Shown here: positions 1 through 52,400 of the stretch, piece after piece
How the letters are laid out: each line of letters opens with the position of its first letter
Position numbering within the stretch: the stretch's first letter is position 1
NCBI GenBank assembly: GCA_964035545.1
Contig: OZ037766.1
Coordinates: forward strand, 22,928,767-22,992,766
DNA length: 64,000 nt
DNA from: Bugula neritina
Taxonomy: Eukaryota > Animalia > Bryozoa
Reading direction: 5' to 3'
Program-made: the position numbers and the translations under genes
Notes under the pieces: generated by a model
The model's database searches: none
Seen by the model: the letters and a program-made list of their open reading frames with translations, nothing else
Told to the model about the DNA's origin: nothing

Positions 1-146
1 TAAAATATTGCCCACAAATGTAGTGTGGCATTTGGCAGCGTAGCCTATTAAAAACTAGCTGGCATAGTACATTGCAAATTCTGGAAGAGCATAAAAAATT
101 ATACATATGACGTTTAACTGTAATAAGCAGAAGTATAATAATTATT

Positions 147-260
147 AGAACAAACATGGGCAAGTTGATAGAGCAAACATGGGCAAGTTGATAGAGCAAA
201 CATGGGCAAGTTGATAGAGTAAATGTAGACATGTTGATGGAGTAGATGTGACCATGTTGA
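147..260. repeat. 23-bp tandem repeat (agagcaaacatgggcaagttgat), ~3 copies plus a degenerate tail
   Basis: Direct inspection. Confidence 0.85.
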
Positions 261-365
261 TGGAGCAGGTGTAGGCAAGTTAATAGAGCATTTAGGGTTG
301 GTTGTAGAAGATGGGCAGCACAAAGAAATGAGAGATATTTAAGTTATAGAGATATGTTAACTTAC

Positions 366-21300: not shown

Positions 21301-21414
21301 ATGGTAGTGCAAAGTAGGCACACCATCTTTAACACCAGTACCGTTGTGGTGTACGGTTACATTTAGAACTGTGCTCATTAGGCTGAACAACAGGCTAAAT
21401 TCAGTACACAGCAT
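366..21414 (-). CDS. EVC2: EVC2/limbin-like type I membrane protein (multi-exon; 3' end beyond left edge of window)
   Basis: GT-AG exons join into a signal-like N-terminus (MLCTEFSLLFSLMSTVL, 21414), a long beta-rich ectodomain, one TM helix (IINLIIAVVVISGFIIGLLLIPLVIFIVLII, ~11650-11740) and a long E/K/Q/L coiled coil. The post-TM segment (VDDSIVSILALKD...LDIQATVEVDKRMEAQR...LGMVKNGDIT...EQDDLSYRLKLEQDEE...AAWLMKEHANNV...RQKLVLEEKLAKRR) resembles the EVC2 family region as I recall it. It sits head-to-head with an EVC-like gene. The last visible exon (366-473) ends in a GTAAGT donor. One phase inconsistency lies near 18760 (see findings). Confidence 0.8.
3862..4663. repeat. 34-bp minisatellite (acttacagctatatacaattagcacatacagtat), ~23 copies
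   Basis: Direct inspection; in an EVC2 intron, ending next to a splice acceptor. Confidence 0.95.
5972..6048 (-). mobile_element. Degenerate tRNA-like sequence (SINE head or tRNA pseudogene)
   Basis: The - strand has a box B (GGTTCGAATC) and tRNA-like spacing, but the T-stem and acceptor stem do not pair. Confidence 0.5.
16792..17000 (-). mobile_element. tRNA-derived SINE-like element, copy 1 (degraded)
   Basis: Shares aaactcac..gtttatagtcac.atccctgtgagaa, gact..atgc.ctt..taaca.caccaa and gtgttca.ta with the 28013 copy. Confidence 0.65.
19323..19431. repeat. 29-bp tandem repeat (agtcacagagcaccttgtcacgtgcatat), ~3.7 copies
   Basis: Unit starts at 19323, 19352, 19381 and 19410. Confidence 0.9.
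20275..20473. mobile_element. MITE family A copy 1 (Tc1/mariner-pogo-like termini)
   Basis: TIR CAGTGCTCCCTCT...AGAGGGAGCACTG, flanked by TA on both sides; the interior is similar to the copies at 26783 and 41584. Confidence 0.85.
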
Positions 21415-23510: not shown

Positions 23511-26500
23511 ATGTCGGCTCAAGCTTGTTTGGAAATAGACGTGGATGTGGAGAAAATTATTGAGATTCGACTTCCTGAACCACTCGGACCTGGTCTCGGC
23601 TTTTTGTTTGCTTTTCTTGTTGGTGGAATTCTCGGAGCAGTTTTAGCGAGGTTTTGCTTCCGGGATTATCTTAAAAGTAAAGTAAGTATTGTTTTAAAAT
23701 CTTCAATAAGCCAGCCTGTTGTTCACATATTAGGTTCTATAACTTAGTTAAGTTATCAAATATTTGTTTATAATTTAGAATCAGGATGAAGAGAAAGCTA
23801 CTCTAATAGCACAAGGAATACCATTACATTTGAGAGGACGGGAGAAAACCATGGCATTTCCTGCCACAATGTCAACAACAGCAGTCGTGTCAAATGAGGT
23901 AAATAATAATCTTATCTTTAATCTTAATTACCCAGCAATTTGTTTCCAACTTTCAAAGTGATTAAATTATAACTAATTACAGCATTACAGCCGTCATATT
24001 CACATGCTGCTACAAATACTAGCAAAATTTATTAAGGTTTTCTGCAGCATTTCTATTCAGTGTTATGTTCGCAGATGTCACTGGCAACTCATGATGACGA
24101 GTGGAGTAAGAAAGATCCCAGACCTGGCACGGCTTCTCCAACAGCCGTAGCCTTAGATACAAGTGATGTTCAGTTTATAGGCTTATCTGCTGCTCTCATA
24201 AAGCAGACGGGAGAAGGAGCTGAGGCTGAGATCTGTCACCAGGATTGCAGTAGCTTTCTGAGTCTGGAGGAACAGTTTCGACAAGAACGCATTGAGGTGA
24301 TTATGTTAATGATATAAAGCGTGTGCTTGAGTATTTAGTCAACATTTTTCCTGCTGGGTTGGAAATGTATGGAGAGTTCTGCATCCCTCGCATTCAGCAC
24401 ACAACAACATTACCTTTATGCTGTGTTAGTTGCAGTTATTATATTTATGCTGTAGAGACTACACTTGGTTGAGGGCTAAAAACTATCTCTCTATTTGTAA
24501 ATTTTCATCTTATATATACAGAACATGACATCATACAGTTGCCAAACATCATCTGATTCATGCAGTAATAACAAACAACTGCATTCCTCACATTCAGCAC
24601 ACAACAACATTACTTACATCATGTAGCAAAATTGAAACCTACTCTCTTTTTTTGCTCAAAAGTAGTGTAAAAATTGAACATGTAGCTTTAGATAAAATTG
24701 ATGCGGACAACTTTTGTTACGTGCTTGGTTGATGATAACTATATAATCTATATTAAATATACTGCTAATAAACCTGCAGTATTTCATACTATCACTAACA
24801 TAGGGTATTATAATTACTTCAAGTCAAATTTCAATTATTTTGATAACTTATTTATTTTAATTTACTTGTAAATGTCCATGTATGTAGTTTTTCAATGATT
24901 TATCCTTTTAAAGGCAATTAGCTCTTGTTTTGCAGTCCTTGGTGTGTGTGGTGCGAATCTACCTCAACAGGCTGGCAGCCGGTAATAAAATAAGCGAGGA
25001 AGACGCCGACAGAATAGTTCGGGAGTTGAAGAAGAAATGTACAGAAATAGTGGAGAGGAACACCAGTGATGAAACTGCTGCTATACAAGTATGTATTCTT
25101 TACTGCACTTCTTTATGTTGAAAACAATGTTTAGGTGATCATGGCTGTTGAAAGAAATAGTTTGGTAGCCCAATATCACAATTTATAGATTTAGTAAAGT
25201 TGCCTACAATATATATGCTTAGCTAATATTTTGGTCAAAATTATGTGAATATATTAATCTTTCATTTAAACATGAAGAAAACTGCTATTTGTTGTGTGTT
25301 GAAAGAAAATATAGCGTAATTAAAATTTGAGTAAAAGCAGAAATTATAAATTTAAAGCTGTTGTACTAGCAGGGTTTAAATGGCAGGCCAGACAGTAATT
25401 TAGCTCACTGTTAACATTAATAGTTTGTCTAGTAGAGTAGATATGCCACCAGACAATTTATTTCAGAAGTTTCAGCCTCTAAACTTTCTGCACGTTTTGA
25501 TATTTAGAAGCACTGTCTTGTTCAGACATCTTACACTTGATACCTGCATTTCAGTTGTATCATACACTGTTTATTACCAGGCATTAACAAATGACCCTAA
25601 ACTACAGCAGAATAGCGTTGCTATGCAGACAGAAACAGATAAAGTACATGCAGAATCTGTGCAAAAAATGGTGAGTCAATTATTCCATTGTTTAATTTAC
25701 AGCCTCAGATGGTCTGCCACAGAAAGTATATATTACATCTACTGTCCTATAATAAAAAGGGATTCACTATTTAAACTACTTTTTGTTATTCAACTAAAGA
25801 AGAAGTTTAACTGAAATGAGTCTAGTTGTAAGCTAGTGTTACTGATGAGTCTGAGAGTTTTGTGTTTCAGCTCTAATGTAATAATACATGCTATATTAGC
25901 TGTAGCTCATGCTATTACTGATAAATTACAATGTTACAGAACAATGAGCTGTCTATGTTAGAATCTGACTTGCCACACATGTTAGCCACCGTTGACACAT
26001 TAACCGATGCTGACATTGATGCCCTCATGAACAAATTGAAACATCAGCTTGCAACGAGAGAGAAAAAAGTCAGCGATGAGACAAACAGACAGATACAGGT
26101 AAAGATAGTTTATTTAGTCCCTAATTCAAGTTTTAACCTATGAATTTTTTTTCATAGTTTTAGCTAGTTAGTTAGTTCTTCCCACATTGAACTTGGCAAC
26201 ACATTTTTGACTTTATCACTTCAGCCCTGTATCTTAAGTGATGGCTAATATCCTCAAAAGAGTTGAGTTTAACGATATTGAAAGTATTTTTTTACTGCAG
26301 GCATTAGAGGAGAGACTAGCTCGAAGGAAAGAGTTAGCGGAACAAAACCGTTTGGCAAAGCAGGTTGCTAAAGATACAGTAGAGACCAAAGTCCATCAAC
26401 AGTCTGAGAATCTCAAAATTCTCGTTAAAAAGTCCAGTTTGCCAGCTCAGACCGCAGAAGAGATTTTGAAGAACTATGAGAAAGATCTTTGGAAGTTACA

Positions 26501-29500
26501 ACAAGCAAATGATGATGGTGAGTAGACGTTCTAAATACAGTATACAGAGCTGGTGTGCATTATTAGTTAACTTGTGTGATTGTTCACAACTTAGTAGGCA
26601 GAATTTGTGGGTATGTATGGTGAATAAAATTAAAAAATGCAGTTATTGCATTTATAATAAGTTACACAAGATCATGCAAAGTTTTCATGTTGATATATAT
26701 TAACATCATGAGGTAAAGATAGAATTTTTTTGTAGTTGATAAATGATGTTCTAAATCTTTTTCCCCTTGACACTTTCTCAAACAGTGCTCTTCCGTATCT
26801 CACTGAACTGTGGGTCCTAAAGCCTCAATTCGTGGCATAGTAGAATACCAGAGTTAACTCATAGATCCGTTAAATTTGGTCATTTTGTCTCTATACACAT
26901 ACATAAGCCACAAAACGGGGGTCCAAGTCCTTGTCGTAACTTATGGAATTTTTTGAGAACTGGATCCGTGAGGTTTGAAAGGAGCACTGTACATCAATTA
27001 AATCACGAGGAGAAAATATTAACCTGCTTGGTATATTTCATCTATATTTAGAGCGCAGTGAACAAGAGCGTCTGCTGCACGAGAAACTAGCTAAGAAAAG
27101 AAGGAGTCGTCTAAAGAAACTTTCTAACCAACAGAAGAAGGCAAAGGAAGAGCTATATTCTAAATTGGGCAAGTCTTCCAACCCAGCAGACGTCAAGGTA
27201 CGTGAATTTTCAACTGTTGAGTGATATTAAACTTGTCCCTTACACTGTAGAAGAGTTAACTCGTTTTTGATTTTTTTATTATTTATTATATTGTTAAATT
27301 CGTCAATAAAAATGTTGATACTTTCAATTTTTAACATACATTTTTGTAACGGACTGTTTGATGCTTTGTTAGTCATTTTTACTGAAAGTGCTGTGTTTCG
27401 CACAAAGCCGTATAAACATCTCCATTTGTTGGCAATAAAAATGAATTTCTTTAAAACGCAGAATTTTGACCGTATATTATACTTCTTTTCTGACCAGAAC
27501 TAATTTCTCAGATTTGGCTGATGAACCAAATCATATTAAGTTCACTGATAATAAAAACTACAGCACTTTTCCATGTGTCTATAAGCTAAATATATCCTTA
27601 AAACCTGCTCCATATAATTTCAGGCATACGATGAGATGTTGGATCAGTTACATGAGGAGATGGAAAAAACGGTAGCTGAACTGGATGCTGAGGAAGCCAA
27701 ACAGATGACGGAACTGGCTCAGTCATACCTTGAGAACCTCACTTCTTCAACTGGTGAAGTGGATGAACAGTTTGCTAACCAGCTGGTAGAAGAGGGAAGT
27801 GTCAATGAAGATGATGTTTCTAAGATCATTAAGCTGCATAAGGCGGAAATGAAAGAGTATAATCGTGAGTATGAGACATCATTCGTGAATTCTATGGTTT
27901 ATAGTGTTGAACTTCTTACAAGAAAGATGATTTGTATAATGCAAAAATGATTAAACTACAGATCTGTTGATTTTGAAAAGTTCAGGTTTATCTCAGCTGT
28001 TTTACTAAAAAAAAACTCACGCAAGTTTATAGTCACTATCCCTGTGAGAAACTTCTGGTAGAAAGGGTTTTTGTTAAAGCGGGCTAAGGACTTATTTAAA
28101 CGAGGCACAGGAGCAATTATGACTGGATGCTCTTCCTAACAACACCAATGGCCTTTGTCAGGCTCGAACCCATGACCTCGTGTTCATTAGCCCCTAGACC
28201 ACGGCGCTCCTCAGCTGTTTTACTAAATACTGATTGTATTTATGTTTATATTGTTCACAGGAAATAGAGCGGCTGAGCAGAAGGCGATGGAAAGTAAGTT
28301 AGAAGGGCGTTTGGCGTTGAGGAAGAAACAAAGAGAAGAAAGCAAAGCTGAAGATCAGAGAGTATTTCAGGCTCTGAAACATCAGCAAGAAGAGATGGTG
28401 CAGACGGTTATTCAAGGTCAAGCAGACATTACAGAAGAGTAGGTTATGTAATACTTACTACTTTTTAATGTAATATTCACTACTCTGTTATGCAATACTC
28501 TGTTAGAGACTTGGTAGAAAACTCAATATTCTGTTCATTCCATTGAAATGTAAACTATTTTCTAAAATTTTGAAAATTGTTTCTTTAGTTTGCTGGCTAA
28601 ATAAGTTAGTCATTATCATCAGTTGCTGTTTATTACTTCGTGAAATTACTGATGAGAACAGCTTTTTTGCTTGACTCATCTAAACTGTATAGATGTGTTA
28701 GTGGTTATGAAGCAAATTGTAAACCTCCAGGAAACTGCTTACTCTAGTATTTGGCTAATTTGTGGATTATTGTGTTTAACAGAGCTGCAGCTCGAATCAT
28801 GGAGGAGCATAAAAGAAATATGGAGACCGTAAACAATCAGCTAGCTATGAGTAAACTCCGTCAACAGAAACAGTGAGTATTCTACGTAAGGTGCTGGTTA
28901 TACAGAGCTGTTCTATTGGATATAAAACTTGTAGTACTTTAGGTAACTATTTAATGTAACCAGTAACTGTAGTGCTCTGTTTAGTTAATATTTGTATTAT
29001 CTAATGTAAATACTGTAGTGCTGGATGTGAATAACAAATTTATGTTTTGTATTGCTTAGTAATTGTATATACAAATATGTAGCCTACATGCTTGTACATG
29101 TGTACATATGTGCATTTGTAGATGTATGTACATCGTACAGTATATATGTATACATTTATAAATGTATACATATATACTGTACGATGTACATACATTTATA
29201 AATGTATACATTTATATATGTATATGTGTATGTACTATGTAGTAATCAAAAAATAGTTGTGTCTTCAATATCATTGTTATTAGTCTGTTGCGTGGTGGTA
29301 TAATTAAACAGGCTAGAAGAACGGCTGGCTCAGAGGAAAGCCCGACTTGCTGAGAAAGAGAAAGCTCAAGAACTTAAAGAGCATGCAGGTGAAAAGCAAT
29401 CTAAAAAAGAGAAAGAAAAATTAGAGCAGGAAATTGCTGATGAAAAGAAAAAGATTAAAGATGTGAGTTTAGTTGTATAGTTTATTAAAAACGTGGTACA

Positions 29501-32500
29501 TACCAAAACTAATTCAAGTCACTTGATAGAAGAACTTAGAAGTAACTAATGTTTTTTTGGAGCCTATTTTTTACAGCCTTACTACACCCAATGTGTTTTG
29601 AGTCAACTTTCTTTCAGTCACATTCTAAACTCTAAAGGCTAAGAAACTAAAGGCATACACTGTAGTTTGAATCACTAACTGCTTAGCTGAATTACAGGAT
29701 CAAGAGAAAGAGCTGGCAGCTCTCAGAGAAAGGCTAGAGGATGAGACTAGGCAAGCCCTATTAGCTCAAGAAGCACAAATAAGTCAGCTGATTGGACAAT
29801 TGGAAGTGGGTCAAGCTAGGCGAAAGAACATTATTCAGAAGCAAGACAAACTAATCACTGAACTTGAAAATCAGTTAGCTAATAAGGTTAGCATTTTAAT
29901 GTTTCTAAAACTGGTCTAGTTATCTAAAGGTCTGTTTATTTCTTCAGAGTTCATGTGCTATGCATTATGATATGTACAGTGCATGTCTCATGGTTTTACA
30001 TCAGTGAAAGTAGCAAAAGTACTCGTAGCCATGTCTTAGGTGTTTGGGATTGTGTTCTACTCTAATACAATTTATTATAATATAATATCTTTGATATTAC
30101 AGGTCAATTCTAAGGTAGGTGGCAATAAATCCAAAGCCAGTGTTGCTTTCTGATATTTCTTTTCTTGATTTGAAAAGATTTTTCTACAAAATTTATGAAC
30201 CTGATCGTTCCCATAGTATAGTCAAACTCGGTGTTGTGCTACCAATTTTGTTTTTCTGCAATCATGGCAATAGTATGCGCTTAATAATTTTCATCTTTGT
30301 GCCTACTGGATAATTTAAATTTTTAATGTCATCTGCCATGAAACGAAGCTAGTTGAAATTTGCTTCTCTTGTAAATATAGCAGATTATGCTTTAAACATT
30401 TTTTCAAACTGTTTATTATATCGATTTATTCATGGATAAGTATTGGTACATATTGATAATAATATGTGGGTTTGCAAACTGTAATTAATAAAATATGACG
30501 TTTAACTAATCAAACTAAGTAACGCCTTCGCCTCAAAAGCTGTAAAGTGCTGTGTTTACCGCTTTTGTTTTGAAATTGGTAAAGGTGGGCGAGAATCCAA
30601 AGGGCTATACGACTACTACCGAGTTAATGCAGAAACATTATGGACAAGTAGACAATCTCACCGCAACTCTTCAGCAAACTAAAGAGAGACAAGAACAAGC
30701 TCTGCAGGAGCGTCTGGAGCAGAAGAAGTTGAAGCGAGAAGCGTGAGTTGTTACGTCATGTCATGCTGACACTGACACTATACACTGAGACTGTCAGCTT
30801 TGTTTATATCATGTGCTGCCTGTTTACAGAGAAATCAAGCAGCAGATTAAGATGGAGGCTCAGCGAGAAATGGAGAACCAAAGAGCCAGAGGTGCTGGGT
30901 AAGTGAATGGAACGTGTCAAGATCTTAACTAAAAAAGTGACGAATAAATATGACAATATTTTGTTTAGATGACACATTTTTGAATAATTTTCGTTCAAGG
31001 GTATATTTTCTGTTCTTTTTCATAATCGTTGGCAAAATAATTATCCAATTTGTGGTTCGAATACTTTGAATTGCGCTTGAAGTATTGGATCTATAGGCCA
31101 GACTTAAACTAAAATAGCACCACATAGAGTTTTACTTGTACTTACGCGGCCAACAATTATTTAAACTCAAAATGTTTATTTCTGTCCTAATTTTGTTATT
31201 GTGACGATTTTATCAACGCATTAAAGATTATGCATGCTGATTATGTTGTCATATAATAAGATTAATTTGTGTGTCTAACGTATATGTAAAGTTATTTTTA
31301 CAGTTTTAATAATGCAACTTTCGAACTTGGCTGTGTAGCACACCAAACTAAAGTTAATTAATGTAATATTATAAGAAATAAATCCAAAATTTTATAGTGA
31401 CTCACTTATGCATTTGCTGCTGCATTGTCTTGTAGGGTTGCCTCCCACATTCTTCTCGACATGATGTTACAACAGAGACATGAAAGAGCCATGCAGGAAC
31501 TTGAGATTGAAATGAAAGTGGAGTTGCAGAGGTCAAAAGATCAAATAAATAATGAGCTGAATGCAGAAATGATGGCTGCCCTTAGTGTAAGTACATAAGA
31601 AATAATGACTGGCTGTCCTTAGTGTAAGTACATAAGAAATAATGACTGGCTGTCCTTAGTGTAAGTACATAAGAAATGATGACTGTCCCTAGTGTAAGTA
31701 CATAAGAAATGATGACTGTCCCTAGTGTAAGTACATAAGAAATGATGGCTGTCCTTAGTGTAAGTACATAAGAAATGATGGCTGTCCTTAGTGTAAGAAC
31801 ATAAGATTTGTTCTCCTGTATTGAAGAGTTATTAAGCTAGCCTGACATCTACTATACATACAATTTGGGTTTAACCATTATCAACAGACCACTCGGATTT
31901 TAGCATATGGTCTAAGTAAAAATAATCTGCAGCGAAAATCAAATGCACTCCCATAATAAATGTAATGTATTGGTTGAGTTCAATCAGTGTTTTGCTCTAT
32001 TTCGTTTTATGAAAGGAAAAAGGTGATAAGCATATAATTTGCTTATTAAAGTTTATCTGTTATATTCACACAAATTTTTGTGCAAAACAAAATCATTTCT
32101 TATATCATTATAATGGAACACAGGCTTTAAGACTTGTCTGATATTACACCAAACCTCCATAGGTATATTTTTTTAGAACTAAGCTGTAGATTTATTTATG
32201 GATGATGTTTTAGGATGAAGGGAAGAACTTTATGGCCCAGATTGCTGCCAACAGCGGAATAACCAATGAAGATCTGACTGCAGCCATGCAGAATGCTGGA
32301 AATTGTATGCATTATTTATTTATAATGATCTTGCAGTAAATACCACATTCGAAACACATCATAGATAATCTAGTCTTATGCACATGTTATACTCAATGTG
32401 AACAAAACTATTAAGATTATGCTTTAAGAAAGTTGTTATAATAAATAATTATAGGCAGGCTATTATATGCTGTTAAACTTAGGAATGTAAATGTTTGCTT

Positions 32501-32875
32501 AGAGTAGGCAGATAACTTTACATGCTGGCAAGGGATATATATGTCAAAGTCAGCAACTTAACACCCACCCATCTTTTTACGTTAAAATTGTTTAGTTTTT
32601 AAACCTTCAACCAAGATTGAAGCTATTAATTACACAAGATAGTTTGTTAACTTTTTTAGTAATTTGTAGCACTATATTAATTTTACTCTGCTGTCAAGAA
32701 CGCGAAACTTCAGTCAAAAAATTTCTCAATATGTACTTTAAAGTAAAATTTTTAAAGTATATTTTCTGTTGTAGCAATTCAAGCTAATGATCAAACTGTA
32801 AAGAAATTAGCGAAAGAAATGAAGGTTCGAGTCAAGACAGCTAGAGGAGAGAGAAGACAACAACAAGAGTATTAA
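23511..32875 (+). CDS. EVC: EVC (Ellis-van Creveld protein)-like, N-terminal TM anchor plus coiled coil (multi-exon, apparently complete)
   Basis: ATG at 23511 (MSAQACLEIDV...) is followed by an N-terminal hydrophobic anchor (GLGFLFAFLVGGILGAVLA) and then coiled-coil exons with EVC-type motifs (ALEERLARRKEL, LHEKLAKKRR, LEERLAQRKA, LQERLEQKK). The last exon 32775-32875 ends ...RRQQQEY-TAA. It is divergent from the EVC2-like gene, as in known EVC/EVC2 loci. Confidence 0.75.
26783..26989. mobile_element. MITE family A copy 2 (opposite orientation)
   Basis: CAGTGCTC...GGAGCACTG|TA; the interior (gatccgttaaattt, catacataagcc) is the reverse complement of copies 1 and 3. Confidence 0.8.
28013..28210 (-). 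mobile_element. tRNA-derived SINE-like element, copy 2
   Basis: The - strand head has box A-like TGGTCTAGGGG and box B-like GGTTCGAGCC; the body is shared with the 16792 copy. Confidence 0.7.
29122..29195. repeat. Perfect spacerless 74-bp palindrome
   Basis: 37-bp arms atgtatgtacatcgtacagtatatatgtatacattta / taaatgtatacatatatactgtacgatgtacatacat. Confidence 0.9.
31565..31805 (+). repeat. 33/37-bp tandem repeat spanning an EVC exon-intron junction
   Basis: Unit agaaatgatggctgtccttagt|gtaagtacata; GTAAG at 31587, 31624, 31661, 31694, 31727, 31760 and 31793. Confidence 0.9.
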
Positions 32876-34447
32876 ATATCAACTGTTGATGTGATTCGGT
32901 CATGTGGCTTAGCAAAGTAAGACATACATCCTCTCTGTAACTTTTGTACACATACTCAGCCACTTACTAGTGGAGAAAGTTGAATTTTCTCTTGAAATTG
33001 ACATTATTTTAAAGAGTGCTATAAATAAAGTAAGCTAGTGTCACATATTAGTAAAAATTTCAAATAAATTAAAATATCCTTGTTTTTAAAAACAATAAAG
33101 ATAATGATGGTACATTTCACCTCCAAGCTCCTTTAAACAATGATGTGCTACGTACCTTAAGAGAAAATTGCAATGATATACAAAACAGTTCCAAGCAACT
33201 GTTAGTTTTACATACCTATAAATATTTTGTAAATATTGCACAGAAATACTTGGAAAACATGATTTTCATATGTTTAATTTTCTAGAAGAAATTGCTAAAG
33301 GAGGACACAACACTAAATGATCTAAAGGACTTATAAACAACTTGAATGGTTTTTATGCCATGCACAGATTTTGCAGTTTCTCTAAGTTTCTGTCTTCCTA
33401 TCCAAATGATATTCTTTCGCTGAAAAATCATATGTTGAAGCTGTTAGCCACAAGTATGTGCCATGGCCTGGTAACCTGAATGGTGTAGTGCAAGATATGA
33501 GTTATCTTAAAAGCAGCCATGCTATATATAAACTTCAGATAAATGAAACAACTTGTATTTCAAGCGTAATTTCCTAGTCCATTTATATGTTAGATCTAAA
33601 ACTAGCATTTCAAGTTGGCAAATATCAGCCCAGAGTTGTAACTAAGTTATCAAGGCTACAAATGTAAAGTTGATTAGGGGCCAGGAAGCTGCTGATAAAC
33701 ATTATTTATGTTCATTTATTATTTAAAATAAAAGTCTCCAGTTGTTGTATTACGGAAAAGTATTTTTTCTAGAAGTTAGTATAATATTCTCCTATGCAAT
33801 ATGTTTTAAATCAATATTCTTTTCATAACACCCTACTTTCTATTGTTGATCTCTACCTTAATTTGGATGCATTTATAACTTTGAGTATAATTTTTATGGT
33901 AATATAATATTTTTATGATTAGTTTCGTTTTTTAAAATAAAATGTATGAATTGTCAAAAACTTAAAAATTTTTCGACTTGACTTCTTTTCTATTTCTTTA
34001 TTATCTAAAACACAATTGCACCATTAATATGTAAACATTCAAATTTAGAAAATATATAGTAGCAATTTAGAAATTTTGGATTAGTAAATTAAAGAAATCA
34101 AAGAAAAAACCGGATTAGATTCATAGCTTTCTTGTTCAGCATATACAATGTTATGAACAAAGGCCTAGAAAATTTCAAAAAATATGACAAATCTGATAAA
34201 AAGAGAACGACTCAATGATTCAAGTGAAAATTTTAGATTACTCCAATATTAGCTAACAAAATAATTTAGAAGATACATATATTATGCACATAAAATATCA
34301 TTCGATATAATTGCTATAAATAAAGCTAATTGTAATTTTTAGAACTGTGAAGCCTGAAATAGGTTGATTTTTTCAAGAGGTCACAACTCTGTATAGTTAG
34401 TGATTGTACGGTGAGATGTAAGGTCAAAGGTGGACAATTCTTTGCAA

Positions 34448-37400
34448 TTAGTAATTGCTTAACAGACTCATAGCTTCAGCTGCTTTACTTCTTACTTTAA
34501 AATCAGGGTCCCCGAGTAAAGCAAGCAAAGCTAAAACATAAATTTTTAAAGATATATCTAGATAATCTATAAATACATTATCACAGCTTATTTTAGAGTT
34601 GATTTGGAAAATGAATAATATGGAAGCCTATAGCTCAACCAGTTATAAGCTTAGAAATCTTATACCTCAAACAATTTTCAACTCAAGTACTAAAAAATTA
34701 GAAAAAAAATGTAACTAAAAATAAAAAATCATTAGTAAAATCTTCCAATACAAAATCTTACCGCTAGAGATGTGGCTATGATTAACTAAAGAATGAGCAC
34801 TGTCTGGTAAAGCATTCATCAGAAAACCTAAAAATATGGCTGCATTGGAGCGAATTTCTGGCCAGGGGCTCTTGAAAGCAGTAATGATGCTGGTGATGAA
34901 GTTAGGAATATGCTCTTTAAAATCTATGACCTACAAAACAATTCGTGTTATTAGCTAATTATGGTTAGCTCACACGACAGTACAGCTAGCTGATTCTTTA
35001 ATATTAGTCATTGACCCCATTTTTTGGGCAGCAATGTCAGTTGTTGTCACTATCAACATAAAATTGTATTTTAACTCAATGTTCAGTCATTTGTTAGCTT
35101 CCTAAAAAGATAATCAGAATTATGAAAACATTTAAGATAATTTTAAAAGTAAATCAGACTTACAATTTTTTACGTAAGTATTACATAAAATTGCATTATA
35201 TTTTCGCACTCAGAGCCTAAGAGTATAGCCTGCCTACCAGAGATTTACACAAGTCATTTATAAACTCTCCATAGTGAAGTTGAGCTGAGTCTATCATGTA
35301 TTTCTGGAACATTCCATTTGTACTTTCAGAGTTGAGAAGAGGACCAACCAGTCTTAGAGTGTGTTTACAAGCCTGTAACCAATTAGCATGCATGTAACAA
35401 AACTAATGAAAGCAGTGTATTAATTGGTTGAAAATATGGCTGGATAAAATATCCAACAAACTGGGTTGAGTACAAAACATCTCAAATATCAAAAATTAAC
35501 TTTTAGTGGAAGCACTAGATATTTTAACCCACACTGTATATGAGTGTCTTTGTAACATAGAAAGACAATCATATATCCTCCCTCACACCACTATATATTA
35601 GCACCTTGTAATATTAAGCACAAGCTTCAAATATTATGTTTCTAGGTCACCGTCACCCCCAACCCCCTGTATATCTATTTCTATTCTATATAATCCCCAA
35701 TGGAATAGTTTTTTGGTCATGCTATTTCAGCCTCATAGAAAAAACTAAACATGAATTTGCTGACATGGAATGCCCACTTAAGACACTACTTAGTATGGGA
35801 CAGCTTATACAACACAACACTGTCAAAGAAGAACTGTCAAACAGAGAATATCTTAGCTTGTCATTAAATGTATGGGAACAGATCAGTTATATTGTAAAGA
35901 GGTATATTAGCCATTGACACTGTAACAAGTGATGATTTAGCTAATAGCGTGGCAGTATAAAAAAGGATTCACAGTAAACAAAATAACAACAGATGGAGTG
36001 AGACAGATTGGAGCTGCAATAATGTTGATGTATTCACTGCTGTTGATTTATTTCTCTTATATAACATTCACAGGTAACAAGTTCTTAATGCCTATTTAAG
36101 ATTTACTAATTACTATATATCTTGTGTAGTCTAAAGCATTGAGTTGGCTAGAATTCTTCTTGCAATTATAGTTATAGGAAGCATGTTTAGGATGTTTATT
36201 ATAGTAAACACCACATTTAGGATGTAAACACAAAATTTAGACTTAAGATCCTTGATTTATATTCAGATTTTCAGAGTGTAAGATGATACTATGAAAGTGA
36301 CAAAGAGATTTCAGTTGATTGGTCACTTTAACAAACATTTTACACATGCTTCTTGCAATTCTAATTGCAATATGTAGGCATAGATTAATTGCATCATTTA
36401 CTACATTATGTCCATGTCAAAGTTCTACAAGATGCCAAAAATGAAAGCCATTATAATTTTATCTTTATTTTACTGACAGAGGTTAAAAAAGTTAAGCAAC
36501 CAATTACTCTACCGGATTTAAACCTTAACCAAACACTGAAGATTGGAAACCTCCCAGAATGCTGGCCCATGCTGACAGAACGAGTGTTTTCCAGCCATTC
36601 TAAATACAGTTCAACATATAGATCCCATCTACACTGTGTTAGAATAATAGAAGGTAAACCATAACGCTACATATGATTTTATGAAAATTGTGAGCCATCA
36701 GGCAACTGCATTATAAGCCGACAACTTATTACTTGAATAATCAAGCTTTTTAGATTAAATTTCTCTAAGAAAATGAAATTTTATTTTTTAACAAAAACTG
36801 GTAGCTCCCGTGGGATACAGAGTAGTGGTTTCGTTTGTCAATGGCTACTCCCTTCAAGAAGACAAAACAGGAAATAGTACCGTCTGCCGAGACTATCTGA
36901 CATTCCAAGATGGCCTTTATGATTTCTCCCCAGTTATAAAGATGGTATGTGGAAAAAAGAAGAAAAATGAAGTGCAAAAGATTACTTCAACCTCGAGATT
37001 TTTACGAGTTGTTTTGCATACAGATCATAATGTTACAGAGAGTGGGTTTAAGATGGAGTATGAATTTACAAGTAAGTTATAGCCCATACCTACTTTTTCA
37101 ATCACGTTCATTTAATAATATTTTACCTTTTCATACATGATGTGTAGTTATCAATTATAGTACTAAAATAATATTTTACACTCACTCTACAGCACACAAA
37201 TTAAACTTTGCAGCATTCAAGTCCTAATCTATAGTACTTAGGTCATACTGTGTAGTACTCAAGTCATACTGTGTAGCACTCAAGTCATACTGTGCAATAC
37301 TCGAGTCATACTGTGCAGTACTCAAGTCATACTGCACAGCAACCATGCCATAGTTTTGTTTCTACGATCAGAGTTTCCCACTCAAACACGTTGATAGTTC

Positions 37401-40400
37401 AATAATTTCTTTAACTTAGTATTTTATTCTACGGCTAGGCAAGCCATGTTCATAACACACAATGTGTAACATTACATTTGCAAATAATGCTGGTATTTCT
37501 ATTGCAGGTTCTTCAAAGACATCAGAAGGTAAGTAACTAAAATAGTTGGCCAAAGAAGTAAAATTAAAAAATTACAGTCAACTTGTATAAAAACAAAGCA
37601 GAAAGCAGTTCTTCTAGTCCTCATTATGTGAATTTTTAGAATTTTATTTTCTTATTTCTTCTAATTTATTTACTTATTTCTTCTATTTTATTTACTTATT
37701 TATTCTATTTCTTCTATTCTATTTACTCATTTATTATATTTCTTCTATTTTATTTACTTATTTATTCTATTTTATTTACTTATTTATTCTATTTTATTTA
37801 CTTATTTATTCTATTTTATTTACTTATTTATTCTATTTTATTTTCTTATTTATTCTATTTTATTTACTCATTTTATTTACTCATTTTATTTACTTACTAT
37901 TTATTAGACTGCTACAACTATATACAAGTGAAAGATAAAGAAGAGTTCCAAATCGAAATCGAATCTACAACTTTGGGAGACTCTGAGATTGAGAACAGAC
38001 AAAATATAAGTTGTGTTTGGGACATAGAAAGCTCACTCACACATGTAAGTGTCAACAATTGATAGCAAATTAATATATATCAAATGAAACTCTTAAAGTA
38101 AATATCCTTTAACAAAACAATAATTTTTTACTATGTTAATCTAATGAGTTAAAATCCCTTTTGTGATTCACCTGCACTCAACCTTTTATTGATGCAAACT
38201 TTTCAGCAAGTACTTATAATTCTTTCAATTTCCTCTGAAAATAGCAACTGCCAATTTTTGTTTTGTTTTAGATGATAATTGATATGGCCAATGAAACGAA
38301 TTGGAATACAGCGGCAAACCCAGGTGAAAAGAGAGTGCAAATCTATGGGACAGACTCCTATAGTTGGACACATCTGGAGTTGCTAGAAGAGCTAAAACCA
38401 GACAAAGTGGGATTTAATAAAGTGGAGAGTAGAAAGATGGTGAATAAAAGCAGATGTCTGTTGTATGTATTTGCAAGGAGACGAGAATATTTCCCAACAT
38501 TCACTGTTCAAGTCATGGCCTACACTAAGAGAGGCACAGGTTAGTTGACAATACCTATTACTATGTACTGTCTTCATAATGGTTTTGTTTTAGTTCAGTG
38601 TTTAAAGAAGAAAAGAATTCAAATGCATGCACATTATGCTAACATATTCTTGAAAAATACCACCAGCCTTTTGAATTGATCTTAGTAAGTAAATAAACAT
38701 AATTTTCAAAGTTAAAACTAATACTTTTAGAATGACTTTTGGAAAAGGAAGTTTCTAACTCTACCCGTTCTTGCTACAACTCGTTAAGTTACTTGTAATA
38801 AACCCAAGTTCAAATCAAAACTATTTTTGAAAAAATGAAGATGTTAAAAGATATTAACTTCAAGAGCTTATTATCTATAACTGCAATAGTACTATCAGTG
38901 TAATGAGCTCCAAACCTGACTATATTGTTGGTAGAGAGGTGTATTGATGAGACATTTGACTGCAAAACTGGAGAGATCGAGTGCATACCGGAAACACTCA
39001 AGTGCAACAATATCTCAGAATGTCTAAGTATGGAGGATGAGAGAACATGTATGATAGACTTGCCAGAATTACCAAGTAAGTGAAGTCAAGTATATCTACA
39101 GTAGTACTAGTATTATAGTGTGTTACTATTATACAGTAGTACTAGTATTATATTGTGTTACTATTATACAGTAGAATGAGTGAGGTATTAGTTATAGAAC
39201 TAGTGTAGCACAGTACTAGTGTAGTGTAGTATTAGTGTAACGCAGTACTGGGGTAGTGACTTAACATGACTTCAGTATAGTGATATTGTCACAGTCATAG
39301 TACGTATGCAGTAGGTGTATTTGTAGTGTGCCGAAGTTGTACTGAAGTTTACTATACTATGTTGTAGCAAGAAGTCGACTAGCTGAAATTATGAGATATC
39401 TACTAAACATGTTGGGTGCGCTGGTTTCACTCGGACTACTTATAGCATTGTCGTGCATCGTGGTCAAATTATTACAACACAAAGCTAAATTTTCGGCTTT
39501 ATTGACCTTATGGCGAGCCAGCCCAGGTCTACAATCTGCCTAGTCACATGACCATTGCATATAGATGTGACACAGTCAACACCTTTATTTTAATTATGTT
39601 CACTGACATTTCTTTAATTATAGTAAGCACAGCTGGTGCATTCAGTGTGTAGAGTATAATAACACAGCTCCTACTGCTTACATTTACAAACTTCCTTCCC
39701 AAAATGTTTTTTGATGAGTTCAACATTAATATACTATGTATATAATATTAATTGGATCACAATAGAGGCTCTTAAGTTGTACAATTATAACTGAAGTATG
39801 ATAAAGATGAATACAAATAAACCAAGTACAACCCTTTGAGATGTTTTACATCAGAGAGATATAAATATAGTATGTTACATTGTAGACATATGTGCTACAT
39901 CTTAAGACATATTTCCATGAGTTAAGTAAATATAGACCTAGATATATACACTACATAGACATAGATATATACACTACATAGACCTAGATATATACACTAC
40001 ATAGACCTAGATATATACACTACATAGACCTAGATATATACACTACATAGACCTAGATATATATACTATATAGACCTAGATATATACACTACATAGACCT
40101 AGATATATACACTACATAGACATAGATATATACACTACATAGACCTAGATATATACACTACATAGACCTAGATATATACACTACATAGACCTAGATATAT
40201 ACACTACATAGACCTAGATATATACACTACATAGAAATAGATATATACACTACATAGACCTAGATACATACACTACACAGACATAGATATATACACTACA
40301 TAGACATAGATATATACACTACATAGACCTAGATACATACACTACACAGACATAGATATATACACTACATAGACCTAAATATATACACTACATAGACCTA

Positions 40401-43400
40401 GATATATACACTACATAGACCTAGATATATAAACTACATAGACATAGATATATACACTACATAGACATAGATACTAACCAACACCACTCCAGTTTCGTGG
40501 TCATTCAAATGAAGTAATATTGACGTCAAATTACAGGTAATCTGTTCAAGGAAAGGCATAGCTGATGGACCATTTCCAAACTTAGCCAAGTTTCCGAACA
40601 GTTTGAATGCAGCTGCTCTCACTGACGACTCACTCTACAATCACACACAGCGGGTTCTGAAGCTATATAGTAATCTAACAGCCATTATAATAACCTGAGT
40701 GTTTTCTTACAACCAACCTTTTCAAAGCAGGGGCGTATTTTGAGAGCGATGTTAATTAGTATCGGCCTGATATGACTTTCATTAATAGAAAGCAGAATCT
40801 TTGATAGGCCAGACATGGCTTCTGTTGTTACAAGATTATCAATATCATCTCGGTCATCCATTCCAGACATCATGGCCGACAATATGGTGGTTGAGTATTT
40901 CTGGACCTGTTATATACCAAAATACATAATATAATAATATGAGTGCTGGCCAGGGAACAGTTGTAGTAGTACGGTATAAAGGATAAAACTTGTAGCTAAT
41001 AGTCTAAACCAAATCACTAACCAGACCATTAAACAATAGCTTTAATTGCTTGAGTAATAAGCTTGAGTTTGAATTTCTGTTTAGTGAGTGATAAGGTGCG
41101 TGACTGAGCAAGTGAGTCAGTAATTGAGTGAGTGAGTGAGTGAGTGAGTAAGTAAATAAGTAAGTGGGTGAGTGAATGTAAGTGAGTGAGCGAGTGAGTG
41201 ATGAGTGAGTTAGCAAGTGAGTTACTAAGTAAGCGAGTGAGTGAGTGACATCACTGCACACTAAGAGAATAATACTATCAAAGCTTACCATCTCAGTGCC
41301 GGTGTCTCCTATGTTACCCAGACCTCTGACACAAAGCCTGCGCACCTCAAGACACGAGTCAACGAGACGTCCCATAAGACTCCCTACTAATGTGTCTACC
41401 AGAGAGAGATCTCCGCCACACTTGTCTTTGATCAACTATATTAGAGAGAGAATTTATAACAAAATGAGGTTCAGAATTCAAATATCACATAATATAACAT
41501 CATAGCGTGTCACATCTTCTCACTGAATTTCACATATATCATACTGCATTAAATATGATATATTGCAGTCCTGATTATATATACAGTGCTCCCTCTGTAT
41601 CTCACAGTACCCTTTTTCACGAAATTCTACAGATCATGAAAAGGGCCTGGACCCCATGTTGGGGCTTATGTATGTATGTGGATAGGAACAAAATGGCCAA
41701 ATTTAATGGATCCGTGAGTTATATATCTGGTAAATTACTCTGTCACGAATTGAGGTCTTGGGACCCGTAGCTTAGTGAGATATGGAGGGAGCACTGTATT
41801 GCATTCCTGCTTATCATACATAACATTATTTTATACTGTATTATAGCTGGCATATCCTATTATAGCATGCCATCATATCACATCATATAAGATGCTATTA
41901 CAGCATGTAAGATCCCATCACATGTAATATCCTACAACAGCATGGTATATGCTATAATAGCATGTCATGCTATATCACAGCATAACAAAACTGTAGTGCT
42001 GAGGAAATAGAGAAGACAACTACCTGGCCGAAGAGAGCTGCAACTACAATTCTGTCTGTGTCATAGAGTGTTGAGAGGAAACTTCTCAAACTGGATATTA
42101 TATTGGTTATTTGACTTGGATTGTGCATAGCGAGACAACTACGGTAAAGAAGATAGTAGTAATATAACAGATATTTTAATGATACTCGGCGTATACTAAG
42201 AACAAGAAAGATATATCACACTGTACTCTACAAACAAGCTAACCTTGCTAAGCTCTCAATACCACAAACGTAGTCTGAAGTTGACTGTAGTTTTATCCAA
42301 ACCTTCTGCTCTTCTAAAACCGTACAAATGTTTTCGTTGTCTGCAATTTCAAAGAATGTCTTTAGAGTTTCCACACACAAGCTAAAACACAAAAAGAAAG
42401 TTCTCTAAATCTCATCCCCAAGAAAACTATTACAGAATTTTCTAGAACACATGTAAGAAAGCTGACTCAAGGATTTATTTGTGTAAATGAAACCTTTCTA
42501 TTAGAGGCCATTCAGCTGCTTCCTCTTTTTGATATGTCATATTCAATATGGTATTGAGCAAAAAAGCTTACATAATAATTACAATTAAATAGACAAAATA
42601 AGTAGACGACTCCATAGCACTACAACCACACTCAGGAAACACATCACTTACACGGACGGCACTATATCAACTGCTTTGCCAGGTTTAGGTTTGGAGGGAG
42701 TCTTGGATTTCTTATCTGTGGAGATCTTCCTTGTAGGAGGTTCAGCCAGAGTTGGGAATCTCACCCCGTGATACGAGCCGACCTTCAGCACCAAGGCTCC
42801 AAACAGGTGGTGGTAGTATTTACCAACAGTCTCCTTGACCTCAGGAACCTCCAGCATGTATTTCAAGGCCATCACAATCTACAAACAGATCCATGTCACG
42901 TTCATACTTTTAATTGCTGTCCAGGTGAATGTGAAGACCAAACAAACGTACGAGACAGTTGGATGGTAAATATTGAAAAGGTGATATGTGTGATCTTGTC
43001 GCATGCATAGACTATGCAGCTAGTGTTGGTCCAAATTTAAATTATAAGTCTGTAAGGGTATCCAATTAATATTATGTCTGTCGCATTTAACTGATAACCC
43101 GGCAAGCTCAGTTATATTGCTGCAAAATTTGAATAAAGGCATTCACCGAAAGAGGTTGGAGTGTGGCAACTTTTTCAGACGCCTTCTTATCTGCCGAGCT
43201 GGTCTTTTCTTCATACGGCATGTTTTGCTTGAGCATCTCCAGAAAAGTTTCAATCACTCTATCTGCAGATGAGGGGTTCTTGGCCAAGATTTTCCAGAAC
43301 TCTACTACACTGTGAATGTGTATGGTAAAGATATATATAATTCATAAAAAAGTAATACATATATCAGCACGATTCTAACAGAAGTAATTGACTCGACTAG

Positions 43401-49400: not shown

Positions 49401-52400
49401 GCTTTGCCTAACTCAATGGTCCAATCTTCATCATCTACACAGTCCAGAGATTTGGAGAGAAGCTGGTAATGATTATATTAACAATATACAACCCTGACAG
49501 TATCTTACAGTAATAAACTGTGCTCATGTGTGTGTAAAACACACAAACAGTGGACTGCTATTAGAGTAAAGGTGAAGTAGCTTACTTACATGTATGCAGT
49601 CTACAAGTAGAGTAATATACTTACGTGTAAAATGAGGTCATTCCAATTTTTCTGTGGAAATTCATCTTGATTTTCGTATTCTACAGAACATATGCACTGC
49701 TCATAACTAAGCACAGCCAAACACAACAGTAAACACAACAGTAAACACAGTAAACTAGTCATGGTCAAATGAGCAATGCAAAGTTTACTAGCTGTCTCAC
49801 CTTCAAGCTTAACCTGCATTTTAGGAATCACTTCACTCCACACACCAACGATATCCTCGTGTAGATTGGGAGCCAGAGAAGCCATAGCATTCAGTACATG
49901 GCAGCCCCTTTGTCCCCCGTTCTCTGGTATACCAGACATTACAAAGAACCTGGCTATCAACTGCCTGGCATTAGGCAAATTGGCTATAAGGAAACAGTAT
50001 CTTTATACTAAAGCAGGGCGGAGAACATCTGTTGATTGCGGTTTTTATTACAAAGTTCCAAAACAAAGAAAAATTGCAAAAAATGTTGCTAAAATATTTC
50101 CATCAGTTTTCGACCTTAACAATCAACTTGACGATTGTCAACATTTCACAATAAGATACATGTATGTAGTAATATACACATGTATGTAGTAATATACACA
50201 TGTATGTAGCAATATACACATGTATGTAGTAATATATACATGTATGTAGTAATATATACATGTATGTAGTAATATACACATGTATGTAGTAATATACACA
50301 TGTATGTAGCAATATACACATGTATGTAGTAATATACACATGTATGTAGTAATATACACATGTATGTAGTAATATACACATGTATGTAGCAATATACACA
50401 TGTATGTAGTAATATATACATGTATGTAGTAATATATACATGTATGTAGTAATATACACATGTATGTAGTAATATACACATGTATGTAGTAATATATACA
50501 TGTATGTAGTAATATATACATGCATGTAGTAATATATACATGTATGTAGTAATATACACATGTATGTAGTAATATACACATGTATGTAGCAATATACACA
50601 TGTATGTAGTAATATACACATGTATGTAGTAATATACACATGTATGTAGTAATATATACATGTATGTAGTAATATACACATGTATGTAGCAATTTACACA
50701 TGTATGTAGTAATATACACATGTATGTAGTAATATATACATGTATGTAGTAATATACACATGTATGTAGTAATATACACATGTATGTAGTAATATACACA
50801 TGTGTGTAGTAATATATACATGTGTGTAGTAATATACACATGTATGTAGCAATATACACATGTATGTAGTAATATACACATGTATGTAGTAATATACACA
50901 TGTATGTAGTAATATATACATGTATGTAGTAATATACACATGCATGTAGTAATATATACATGTATATATGTATATAATTATATAAACGGCAGTAAATAGC
51001 ATCACTAAAGACAGTGCGTAATAATAGTATATAGAAACAATTTAGATATCTAAGAATAATCTACAAAATCTGCCACCTTCGTCTTCATAGTCTATCAAAT
51101 AGTCGGCATCATTTCTCTTCTCTTTTCCTCTCAGCTAAGGAACTCAAGTTTTTGCAGACAACTCCAAACGCTTCTGTGTACGTATTAGGAATAATAAACT
51201 CAAGAAGGAATGGCCACAGAACCTACCAGAAACACGAAACAATGGGACGTGAAGCTACCAACACACATATAGAGTAAAGTTTTCAAAGTAGCTGTGGCTA
51301 CAACCCTTACACCAGACTCGCTGTGTACATTTTTAAAAGTTTTGTAACCAAAATTTTAATTGGTTACAACTTGCCAAAAAAATGTATATACCGCCCAACC
51401 AAATAACATGTTCCTTACAACAATGTTAGGCTATAGCCATAAGCAAAGCGTTAGAGTATGTTGAAAATATCTTGAATATATGTGAGTTTTGTTTGAGTTT
51501 GAAAACAATAAACATGTATACATACAAAAATGAAATATATTAGTAAAGTACATGTTTGATACCTTTTCCATGATCTCTACGGTAGTTACAACTAGATGAA
51601 GAACACTCTCACACATAGATCTCAATGCTTGTGGCGAGGTGTGGTCTGGATCCGCAGGTTTCTTAGTTGGAACCTTGAAAACAACACCAATGGTCAAATT
51701 AGTCACACAGTACGTGCCATGATTGATGTATATAAAATGTAGTCAAATTTCCAGCTGGAATTATTACAGTCGGTACCAAAATAAAACAAAACATCTGAAA
51801 AATGAAACTTCAAACGAGTTCAGCAATATTTAATAAAAGTTGTCTTCATTACAAAATTATAATCATTAGAAAATTAGTTTTAAAAGAGCCATGATTAGTG
51901 ACGCGAAAACTAAAATATCAACAGGGTTGACAGCTATGATCACTTTTGAATTACAGTTTAAATAATTTCAAATGTGTATGAAATTATTTCAACAAAAAGT
52001 TAAAATCCTAAAAAAAAGTTTCAAAATTAATCGAATTTTTGAGCTCTACCTAATTTGTTTAACATAAATTTATACACAAATAATGTCTAAAATTTATAAG
52101 AGGTATTACTGATTTAGGACAAAGAAGATTCGTTTACCAAACCAAATAATTATTTAGCCATTTCATGAACTACAGACAGAAAAATTTTCTTCTCTATCAG
52201 CTTTATATTTCCCCAATTTGCATTGTTTTTATAGTTCGTTACAAAAACAAAACAATCTTCATCTAAATAATAAAACTGAAAATGACCAAATACTTGTTAC
52301 TAGTATTTATTGAAGTACTGTGCTATAATTTTCATCACTTTAACTTACAGAAGCATCTTGCAAAGTACATTGTCTCACAATAAATTCTATCATCATCTCT

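Follow-up and report, generated by a model that had tools for sequence, protein, structure and literature searches.

NETO1 and NETO2, Drosophila Neto and C. elegans SOL-2 are auxiliary subunits of ionotropic glutamate receptors and consist of a CUB domain, a second domain, an LDL-receptor class A (LDLa) module and a membrane anchor (PMC9083331). Drosophila CULD, which combines CUB, LDLa and a transmembrane segment, acts in the endocytic trafficking of rhodopsin and TRPL and has been placed together with NETO in a CUB/LDLa family (PMC4732287). Genes located inside introns of other genes are described from Drosophila and mammals; in two sources (PMC5174743, PMC3814207), a short, young, fast-evolving duplicate in an intron of an older gene is given as the commonest form of overlap. 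Here, a stretch of 64,000 nucleotides (nt) from the bryozoan Bugula neritina (contig OZ037766.1, in the following called the window) was analysed, in which a NETO-like gene on the + strand is located within an intron of MROH1, encoded on the - strand.

We consider it probable that this gene is an intact DNA-level duplicate of a NETO-like gene, lying antisense in the MROH1 intron in the Bugula lineage and evolving fast under purifying selection.

MROH1 and the intron holding the nested gene

The host gene extends on the - strand from ~57.7 kb to 34.4 kb of the window. Its 3' part is composed of the following elements:

40479 to 40634, - strand: MROH1 exon ending ...HLNDHETGVVL, from the full-length MROH1 alignment; its 5' limit (40634) was set by visual inspection of the sequence
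35373 to 40478, - strand: MROH1 intron with the nested gene, 5106 nt, GT...AG, phase 0
35238 to 35372, - strand: MROH1 exon ACKHTLR...CKSL, 45 codons; 46 of 47 residues are the same in the sister species
34762 to 34930, - strand: penultimate MROH1 coding exon VIDFKEH...HISS; weak HEAT match
34448 to 34530, - strand: last MROH1 coding exon ...AAEAMSLLSNY, TAA; HEAT repeat with an expect value (E) of 0.002

The window holds MROH1 with three extra coding exons, all downstream of the 5.1-kb intron. The donor GT follows GVVL (40479) and the acceptor ...ttacag precedes ACKHTLR (35372), both in phase 0. For comparison, a full-length MROH1 open reading frame (ORF) of 1655 amino acids (L036) was obtained by searching metagenome contigs with one host exon (24 loci). 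Residues 78-1631 of this ORF match window positions 57400-34754 in strict order; residues 1478-1526 were placed at 40631-40485 and residues 1524-1576 at 35387-35226, with nothing between them. Since the alignment jumps from 40485 to 35387 without loss of a residue, 35373-40478 constitutes one intron. The whole nested gene, including its TATA box and AATAAA, is located within this single intron.

The contig of L036 (Ga0170475_103389468, 5.9 kb) carries MROH1 uninterrupted at positions 103-5070, with four Maestro Pfam domains including PF23227. Either the contig derives from a transcript, or its source is an animal or protist whose MROH1 has no introns.

The Pfam models HEAT_MROH2B_1st, HEAT_Maestro_2 and HEAT_Maestro matched host exons one after the other between 56.6 kb and 44 kb, in this order along the - strand. 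In the 216-Mb genome, at least eight matches to PF23210 were obtained, which cover model positions 29-649 and are all located at the MROH1 locus. As PF23210 was found at no other locus in the genome, the host is the MROH1 orthologue by default. Of the named relatives among the 120 best matches to L036, nearly all carry the name MROH1; they range from sponges to fish and include the bryozoan Watersipora subatra. In ~15 other animal contigs, tblastn returned the same MROH1 exon order.

Structure of the nested gene

The model of the nested gene was rebuilt from the sequence, splice site by splice site. Searches in Pfam, PDB and Atlas were run exon by exon, and exons were joined only for frame, cysteine and substitution counts. 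The features are as follows:

35956 to 35962, + strand: TATA-like box TATAAAA from a pattern scan, 66 nt 5' of the ATG; the same in the sister-species contig L019
36022 to 36073, + strand: exon 1, ATG and hydrophobic 17-residue N-terminus, a putative signal peptide; donor GT, phase 1
36480 to 36653, + strand: exon 2, linker and N-terminal third of the first CUB domain (CUB1), two cysteines; AG/GT, phase 1 on both sides
36805 to 37071, + strand: exon 3, C-terminal two thirds of CUB1; Pfam CUB
37508 to 37528, + strand: exon 4, micro-exon of 21 nt, linker between CUB1 and the second, CUB-like domain (CUB2); AG/GT, phase 1
37908 to 38044, + strand: exon 5, first part of the second, CUB-like region with a cysteine and the motif CVWDI; ends in phase 0
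38272 to 38539, + strand: exon 6, remainder of the CUB-like region, divergent, one cysteine only
38935 to 39075, + strand: exon 7, LDLa module, six cysteines, acidic calcium cluster weakened
39368 to 39543, + strand: exon 8, transmembrane helix and cytoplasmic tail of 22 residues, TAG
39816 to 39821, + strand: AATAAA, candidate polyadenylation signal from a pattern scan, 273 nt 3' of the stop codon

The eight exons lie within 36022-39543 and are separated by introns which are all GT-AG, with phases 1, 1, 1, 1, 0, 1 and 1. The coding total of 1236 nt corresponds to 411 codons plus TAG, free of internal stops and with 13 cysteines in exons 1-7. At the DNA level, the gene is single-copy in the 216-Mb genome. 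Exon 3 scored 33.2 bits with Pfam CUB (E 7.2e-8; cut-off 21.4), and Ldl_recept_a was matched by exon 7 at 31.1 bits (E 2.8e-7; cut-off 24.1); exon 2, searched alone, gave no Pfam or PDB match. Hydropathy has a mean of 1.57 over the 17 N-terminal residues of exon 1 and of 2.63 over a 19-residue window in exon 8, which is followed by basic, K/H-rich residues. Both values fit a signal peptide at the N-terminus and a single membrane pass, as in a type I membrane protein.

The TATAAAA at 35956 may represent the promoter element of the nested gene. A two-codon upstream ORF (ATG GAG TGA) is present at 35993-36001, 29 nt 5' of the nested-gene ATG, and is identical in the sister species.

A first-pass annotation made from the window alone had claimed that MROH1 runs past 40.4 kb, splicing in phase 0 from GVVL (40479) to ACKHTLR (35372) with two further exons, and the colinear alignment of L036 agrees with this. 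It had also described an intact nested gene of eight exons and 411 amino acids with candidate TATA and polyadenylation signals; the rebuilt model is open and GT-AG throughout, and both signals were recovered inside the host intron. The profile check for CUB and Ldl_recept_a that it had proposed returned both domains above cut-off.

Origin of the nested gene

The best protein-level relative of the nested gene in the genome is an exon at 648.8 kb on contig 2, which is the contig of the window, ~22 Mb away. The two are reciprocal best matches, and a gene model was built around this exon:

Contig 2, 644000 to 653999 (L012), exons at ~4339 to 9583 of this segment, + strand: NETO-like paralog, model built in this analysis

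The paralog has the same layout as the nested gene, i.e., CUB1 (Pfam, 46.5 bits), a CUB2-like region, LDLa and a transmembrane segment. Its CUB2-like region is encoded in three exons and holds both cysteine pairs, the LDLa module is canonical (DGDDESEE intact), and the tail comprises ~130 residues. Five intron positions and their phases are common to both genes. The first is located inside CUB1 after CVR(I/V)I(E/K)G, the second ahead of the first cysteine of domain 2, the third in phase 0 within domain 2, behind CVWDI, and the fourth and fifth before and after LDLa. Exon 2 is 30% identical to the corresponding paralog exon (E 3e-7) and exon 3 is 38% identical. One extra phase-2 intron and one tail intron are confined to the paralog, and the 21-nt micro-exon (exon 4) to the nested gene. 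Because intron positions and phases are common to both, the nested gene is, judged by its exon-intron structure, a DNA-level duplicate and not a retroposed copy.

The orthologous MROH1 intron was inspected in other animals. In Watersipora subatra it measures 556 bp and contains no nested-gene exon. In ~10 other animal contigs its length is 120-1405 bp, in L036 it is absent, and nested-gene exons were found in none of these. Since the intron is short and empty in Watersipora and the other animals, the insertion is, on this comparison, specific to the Bugula lineage and took place once Watersipora had split off; the dating of the duplication goes no further than this synteny evidence. Two earlier claims, namely that the gene had moved with its introns and that the nesting is lineage-specific, thus hold.

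Homologues of the CUB1 exon in other species were found in L018 (Logan SRR31252261) and in L024 and L025 (ENA, sample label BRYA16-1). A profile of the CUB1 exon was searched against protein and ORF collections. The best 150 hits were almost all multi-CUB giants, whose summed scores hide two-CUB proteins such as NETO, and three useful ORF fragments (P0031, P0138, P0146) were retained. P0138 has the insertion of the nested copy before the third cysteine, at 42-48% identity, and P0146 is closer to the paralog (55%). A small tree of CUB1 exons groups the family (81/90) with a fast nested branch, and does not settle the orthology of P0138 to the nested copy.

Conservation in a sister species

Sister-species contigs were taken from metagenome assemblies (JGI and Logan) of seven samples and are ~88% identical to the window in introns. 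Two ORFs from the protein and ORF collections belong here as well: P0031, which is unspliced and matches exon 3 at 90% identity, and P0151, a sister-species ORF homologous to exon 6 (87% identity). The longest contig, L019, is colinear with window positions 32191-39174 and contains the last three MROH1 exons and exons 1-7 of the nested gene in conserved order and orientation.

The alignment with L019 is free of gap columns over exons 1-7 (353 codons, 1060 nt), whereas the six introns together contain 709 of them. In the sister species, the frame is open, and every splice site and each of the 13 cysteines is retained; exon 1 is identical at 49 of 52 positions, without a gap, and exon 4 at 20 of 21, with its splice sites kept. 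The synonymous divergence (dS) is 0.135 and the non-synonymous divergence (dN) 0.049, resulting in a dN/dS of 0.36; read in the two wrong frames, the alignment yields 0.95 and 0.67. Only 40 non-synonymous changes were observed versus ~104 expected at the synonymous rate. By region, dN/dS is 0.24 for CUB1, 0.64 for domain 2 and 0.25 for LDLa. Given the dN/dS of 0.36, exons free of insertions and deletions, and the retained splice sites and cysteines, the nested gene is under purifying selection, somewhat relaxed in domain 2.

These data bear on the reading that the + strand model is a pseudogene, i.e., a decaying or never-expressed duplicate which merely looks intact. Consistent with decay are the fast-evolving branch, the ratio in domain 2, the degenerate LDLa calcium site, the recovery of unspliced fragments only, and exon 8, which was not recovered in the sister species. 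A decaying copy would, however, hardly keep a frame of 353 codons open, with splice sites, cysteines and the TATA box in place and all gaps confined to introns, in two species which are ~12-13% apart at silent and intron sites; the dN/dS is 0.36, compared to 0.67-0.95 in the wrong frames. We regard a pseudogene as very improbable.

A further reading is that the nesting is an assembly artefact in which tandem repeats joined two unlinked pieces. Two of the arrays concerned were annotated with Tandem Repeats Finder:

39932 to 40473, no strand: 23-bp minisatellite, 23.6 copies; ends 5 nt from the MROH1 splice donor
37641 to 37896, no strand: 22-bp minisatellite with 11.6 copies, located in nested intron 4; spanned by the sister contigs L019 and L020, in which the order of the flanking exons is unchanged

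A third minisatellite is located at 39097-39249, and no independent contig spanning 39175-40478 was found. On the other hand, independent sister-species assemblies from seven samples connect nested exons 1-7 with the last three exons of MROH1 across the 22-bp array, with order and orientation unchanged, and the contig of the window spans 33.6 Mb. An artefact of this kind is extremely improbable. The misassembly around a minisatellite named in the first-pass annotation as a point to check was not seen at the array crossed by L019 and L020; for 39175-40478, the check found no spanning contig. In correction of the first-pass annotation, the donor-adjacent array has a period of 23, and the 22-bp array is a separate one in nested intron 4.

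Family assignment

The CUB1 exon of the paralog was compared with solved structures in PDB and scored highest with CUB1 of NETO2 (50.5 bits), followed by neuropilin-2 (31.6 bits); the motif DGPF-x-FSP-x-I is common to the paralog and NETO2. A profile of five family sequences reached 69.2 bits with NETO2 CUB1 in one stretch, compared to 41.5 bits for the best neuropilin domain. Exon 3 of the nested gene scored 25.3 bits with NETO2 in one stretch and 18.8 bits with the best domain of neuropilin-1. These comparisons suggest that the nested gene and the paralog are likely members of the NETO family and that the true NETO orthologue in this species is probably the paralog at ~0.65 Mb. An Atlas search for look-alikes of the paralog CUB1 returned just generic CUB clusters.

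Domain 2 has a length typical of CUB, the first cysteine pair followed by C-x-W-D-I, and an exon 5 which is 30% identical to exon 5 of the paralog (E 1e-4). Just one cysteine follows the first pair. In the Atlas look-alike search, exon 6 was not recognised (0.88, noise). AlphaFold modelling of exon 6 alone gave a mean predicted confidence (pLDDT) of 41.9, which is unusable. The CUB2 exons of the paralog gave no match in Pfam and PDB either.

Several observations weigh against an intact NETO-like gene. Exons 5 and 6, each searched alone, matched nothing in Pfam, PDB and Atlas, leaving the second CUB unverified, and it is this domain in which constraint is relaxed (dN/dS 0.64). The acidic calcium cluster of the LDLa module in exon 7 is degenerate. 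For the nested copy, the total scores for NETO2 (25.3 bits) and neuropilin (25.5 bits) are close and the single-domain comparison alone favours NETO2. Furthermore, NETO2 CUB1 was ranked among solved structures, and PDB is without SOL-2, CULD, LEV-10 and LRP3/10/12; as these families are not contained in PDB, the ranking cannot exclude them. Exon 8, carrying the anchor and the stop codon, was not found in the sister-species metagenome contigs or by word search. This does not equal absence, since the exon has a tandem array on either side, at which assemblies from short reads break. Finally, an exhaustive protein search gave only unspliced ORF fragments of the nested gene and no spliced product of ~411 amino acids.

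Part of this evidence would also fit a gene which is real and nested, while nested copy and paralog belong to another CUB/LDLa family, CULD-like or specific to bryozoans, with a partner other than a glutamate receptor. One CUB is verified in the nested protein, the CUB2 exons of both genes match nothing in Pfam or PDB, and CULD, built of CUB, LDLa and a transmembrane segment, has its role outside glutamate receptors (PMC4732287). However, the paralog CUB1 scores 19 bits higher with NETO2 CUB1, with which it has the DGPF-x-FSP-x-I motif in common, than with any other solved CUB, and the stretch between CUB1 and LDLa fits a CUB by its length, first cysteine pair and C-x-W-D-I. We therefore hold membership in another family to be rather unlikely.

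Two claims of the first-pass annotation stand in part. For the order signal peptide, CUB, CUB, LDLa and transmembrane segment, CUB (exon 3) and LDLa (exon 7) were found by Pfam and the hydrophobic ends are present; the second CUB is without a match in Pfam, PDB or Atlas. The designation as a NETO paralog agrees with NETO2 CUB1 being the best single-domain match, which is clear for the paralog and the profile and weak for the nested copy, and the label derives from CUB1 alone.

Proposed course of events and function

For an intact NETO-like duplicate, the following course is proposed. A duplicate of the NETO-like gene at ~0.65 Mb would have entered the MROH1 intron with its introns kept, after the split from Watersipora. 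The host intron, one of the last of MROH1, would have grown to 5.1 kb with the insertion, and the nested copy would then have evolved fast under purifying selection. The nested gene may be transcribed from its own TATA promoter. By analogy to NETO, Neto and SOL-2, its protein is predicted to bind the ectodomain of an ion channel through CUB, most likely that of an ionotropic glutamate receptor, which would be clustered or tuned; the short tail would leave little intracellular scaffolding.

In a variant of this proposal, the nested copy is not redundant but a neofunctionalised NETO derivative, characterised by the degenerate CUB2, the weak LDLa calcium site and the minimal tail. It would have another partner or act as a dominant modifier of the paralog, and its expression would be coupled to that of MROH1, which is expressed ubiquitously, by transcriptional interference or shared chromatin. 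This variant appears quite unlikely.

Neighbouring genes and other features of the window

The window has a GC content of ~33% and its genes are intron-rich. In another MROH1 intron, a 20-bp minisatellite is located at 50158-50965 (40 copies, 95% match), which causes spurious ORFs of 190-270 amino acids on the - strand.

Beyond the 5' end of MROH1 and head-to-head with it, exons of a ThiF-family E1 enzyme are encoded on the + strand at 60981-63781 (weak Pfam ThiF matches on two exons and an 11-residue motif). The gene probably encodes the catalytic subunit of the NEDD8-activating enzyme (UBA3). Short of the 3' end of MROH1, positions 24000-31600 of the + strand contain charged, coiled-coil-like exons rich in E, K and Q, for which two Pfam probes gave no match. 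A Pfam probe of positions 21157-21414 matched nothing. In Watersipora subatra (OY755161.1; L056, 45986-46878), a gene with Pfam EVC_C is located tail-to-tail directly 3' of MROH1.

Significance

Two bryozoan gene annotations are corrected, MROH1 gaining three coding exons and one CUB/LDLa receptor gene being added which was unannotated. The locus offers a dated case of a gene duplicate which landed in a short intron and enlarged it; two Bugula-type species have the insertion, whereas Watersipora and other phyla lack it. It also draws attention to two NETO-like genes in a phylum in which synaptic proteins have not been studied. The general view is not changed, since there are already good descriptions both of young duplicates nested in introns and of CUB/LDLa receptor helpers.

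Comparison with known systems

No description of an MROH1/NETO-like nesting was found among the papers listed by a literature search; the first-pass annotation knew of none either.

The nested protein resembles NETO, Neto and SOL-2 in being a predicted type I membrane protein with the order CUB, second domain, LDLa and anchor. It differs from NETO in that the second CUB is undetectable by sequence and the acidic cluster of LDLa is weakened. NETO tails are long, whereas the tail of the nested protein has 22 residues and no PDZ-type ending. The canonical-looking family member in this genome is the paralog at ~0.65 Mb rather than the nested copy. By architecture, CULD and the nested protein agree in a verified CUB, a single LDLa module and a single transmembrane segment. 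CULD, however, has a single CUB, whereas ~135 extra residues are found between CUB1 and LDLa of the nested protein.

As a pair, MROH1 and the nested gene correspond to the host/nested pairs of Drosophila and mammals, with a short, young and fast-evolving duplicate located wholly inside an intron, on the opposite strand of a larger, older and broadly conserved host. The difference lies in the intron, whose ancestral state was short (0.1-1.4 kb in other animals): it was enlarged with the insertion, rather than having been long before it took up a gene.

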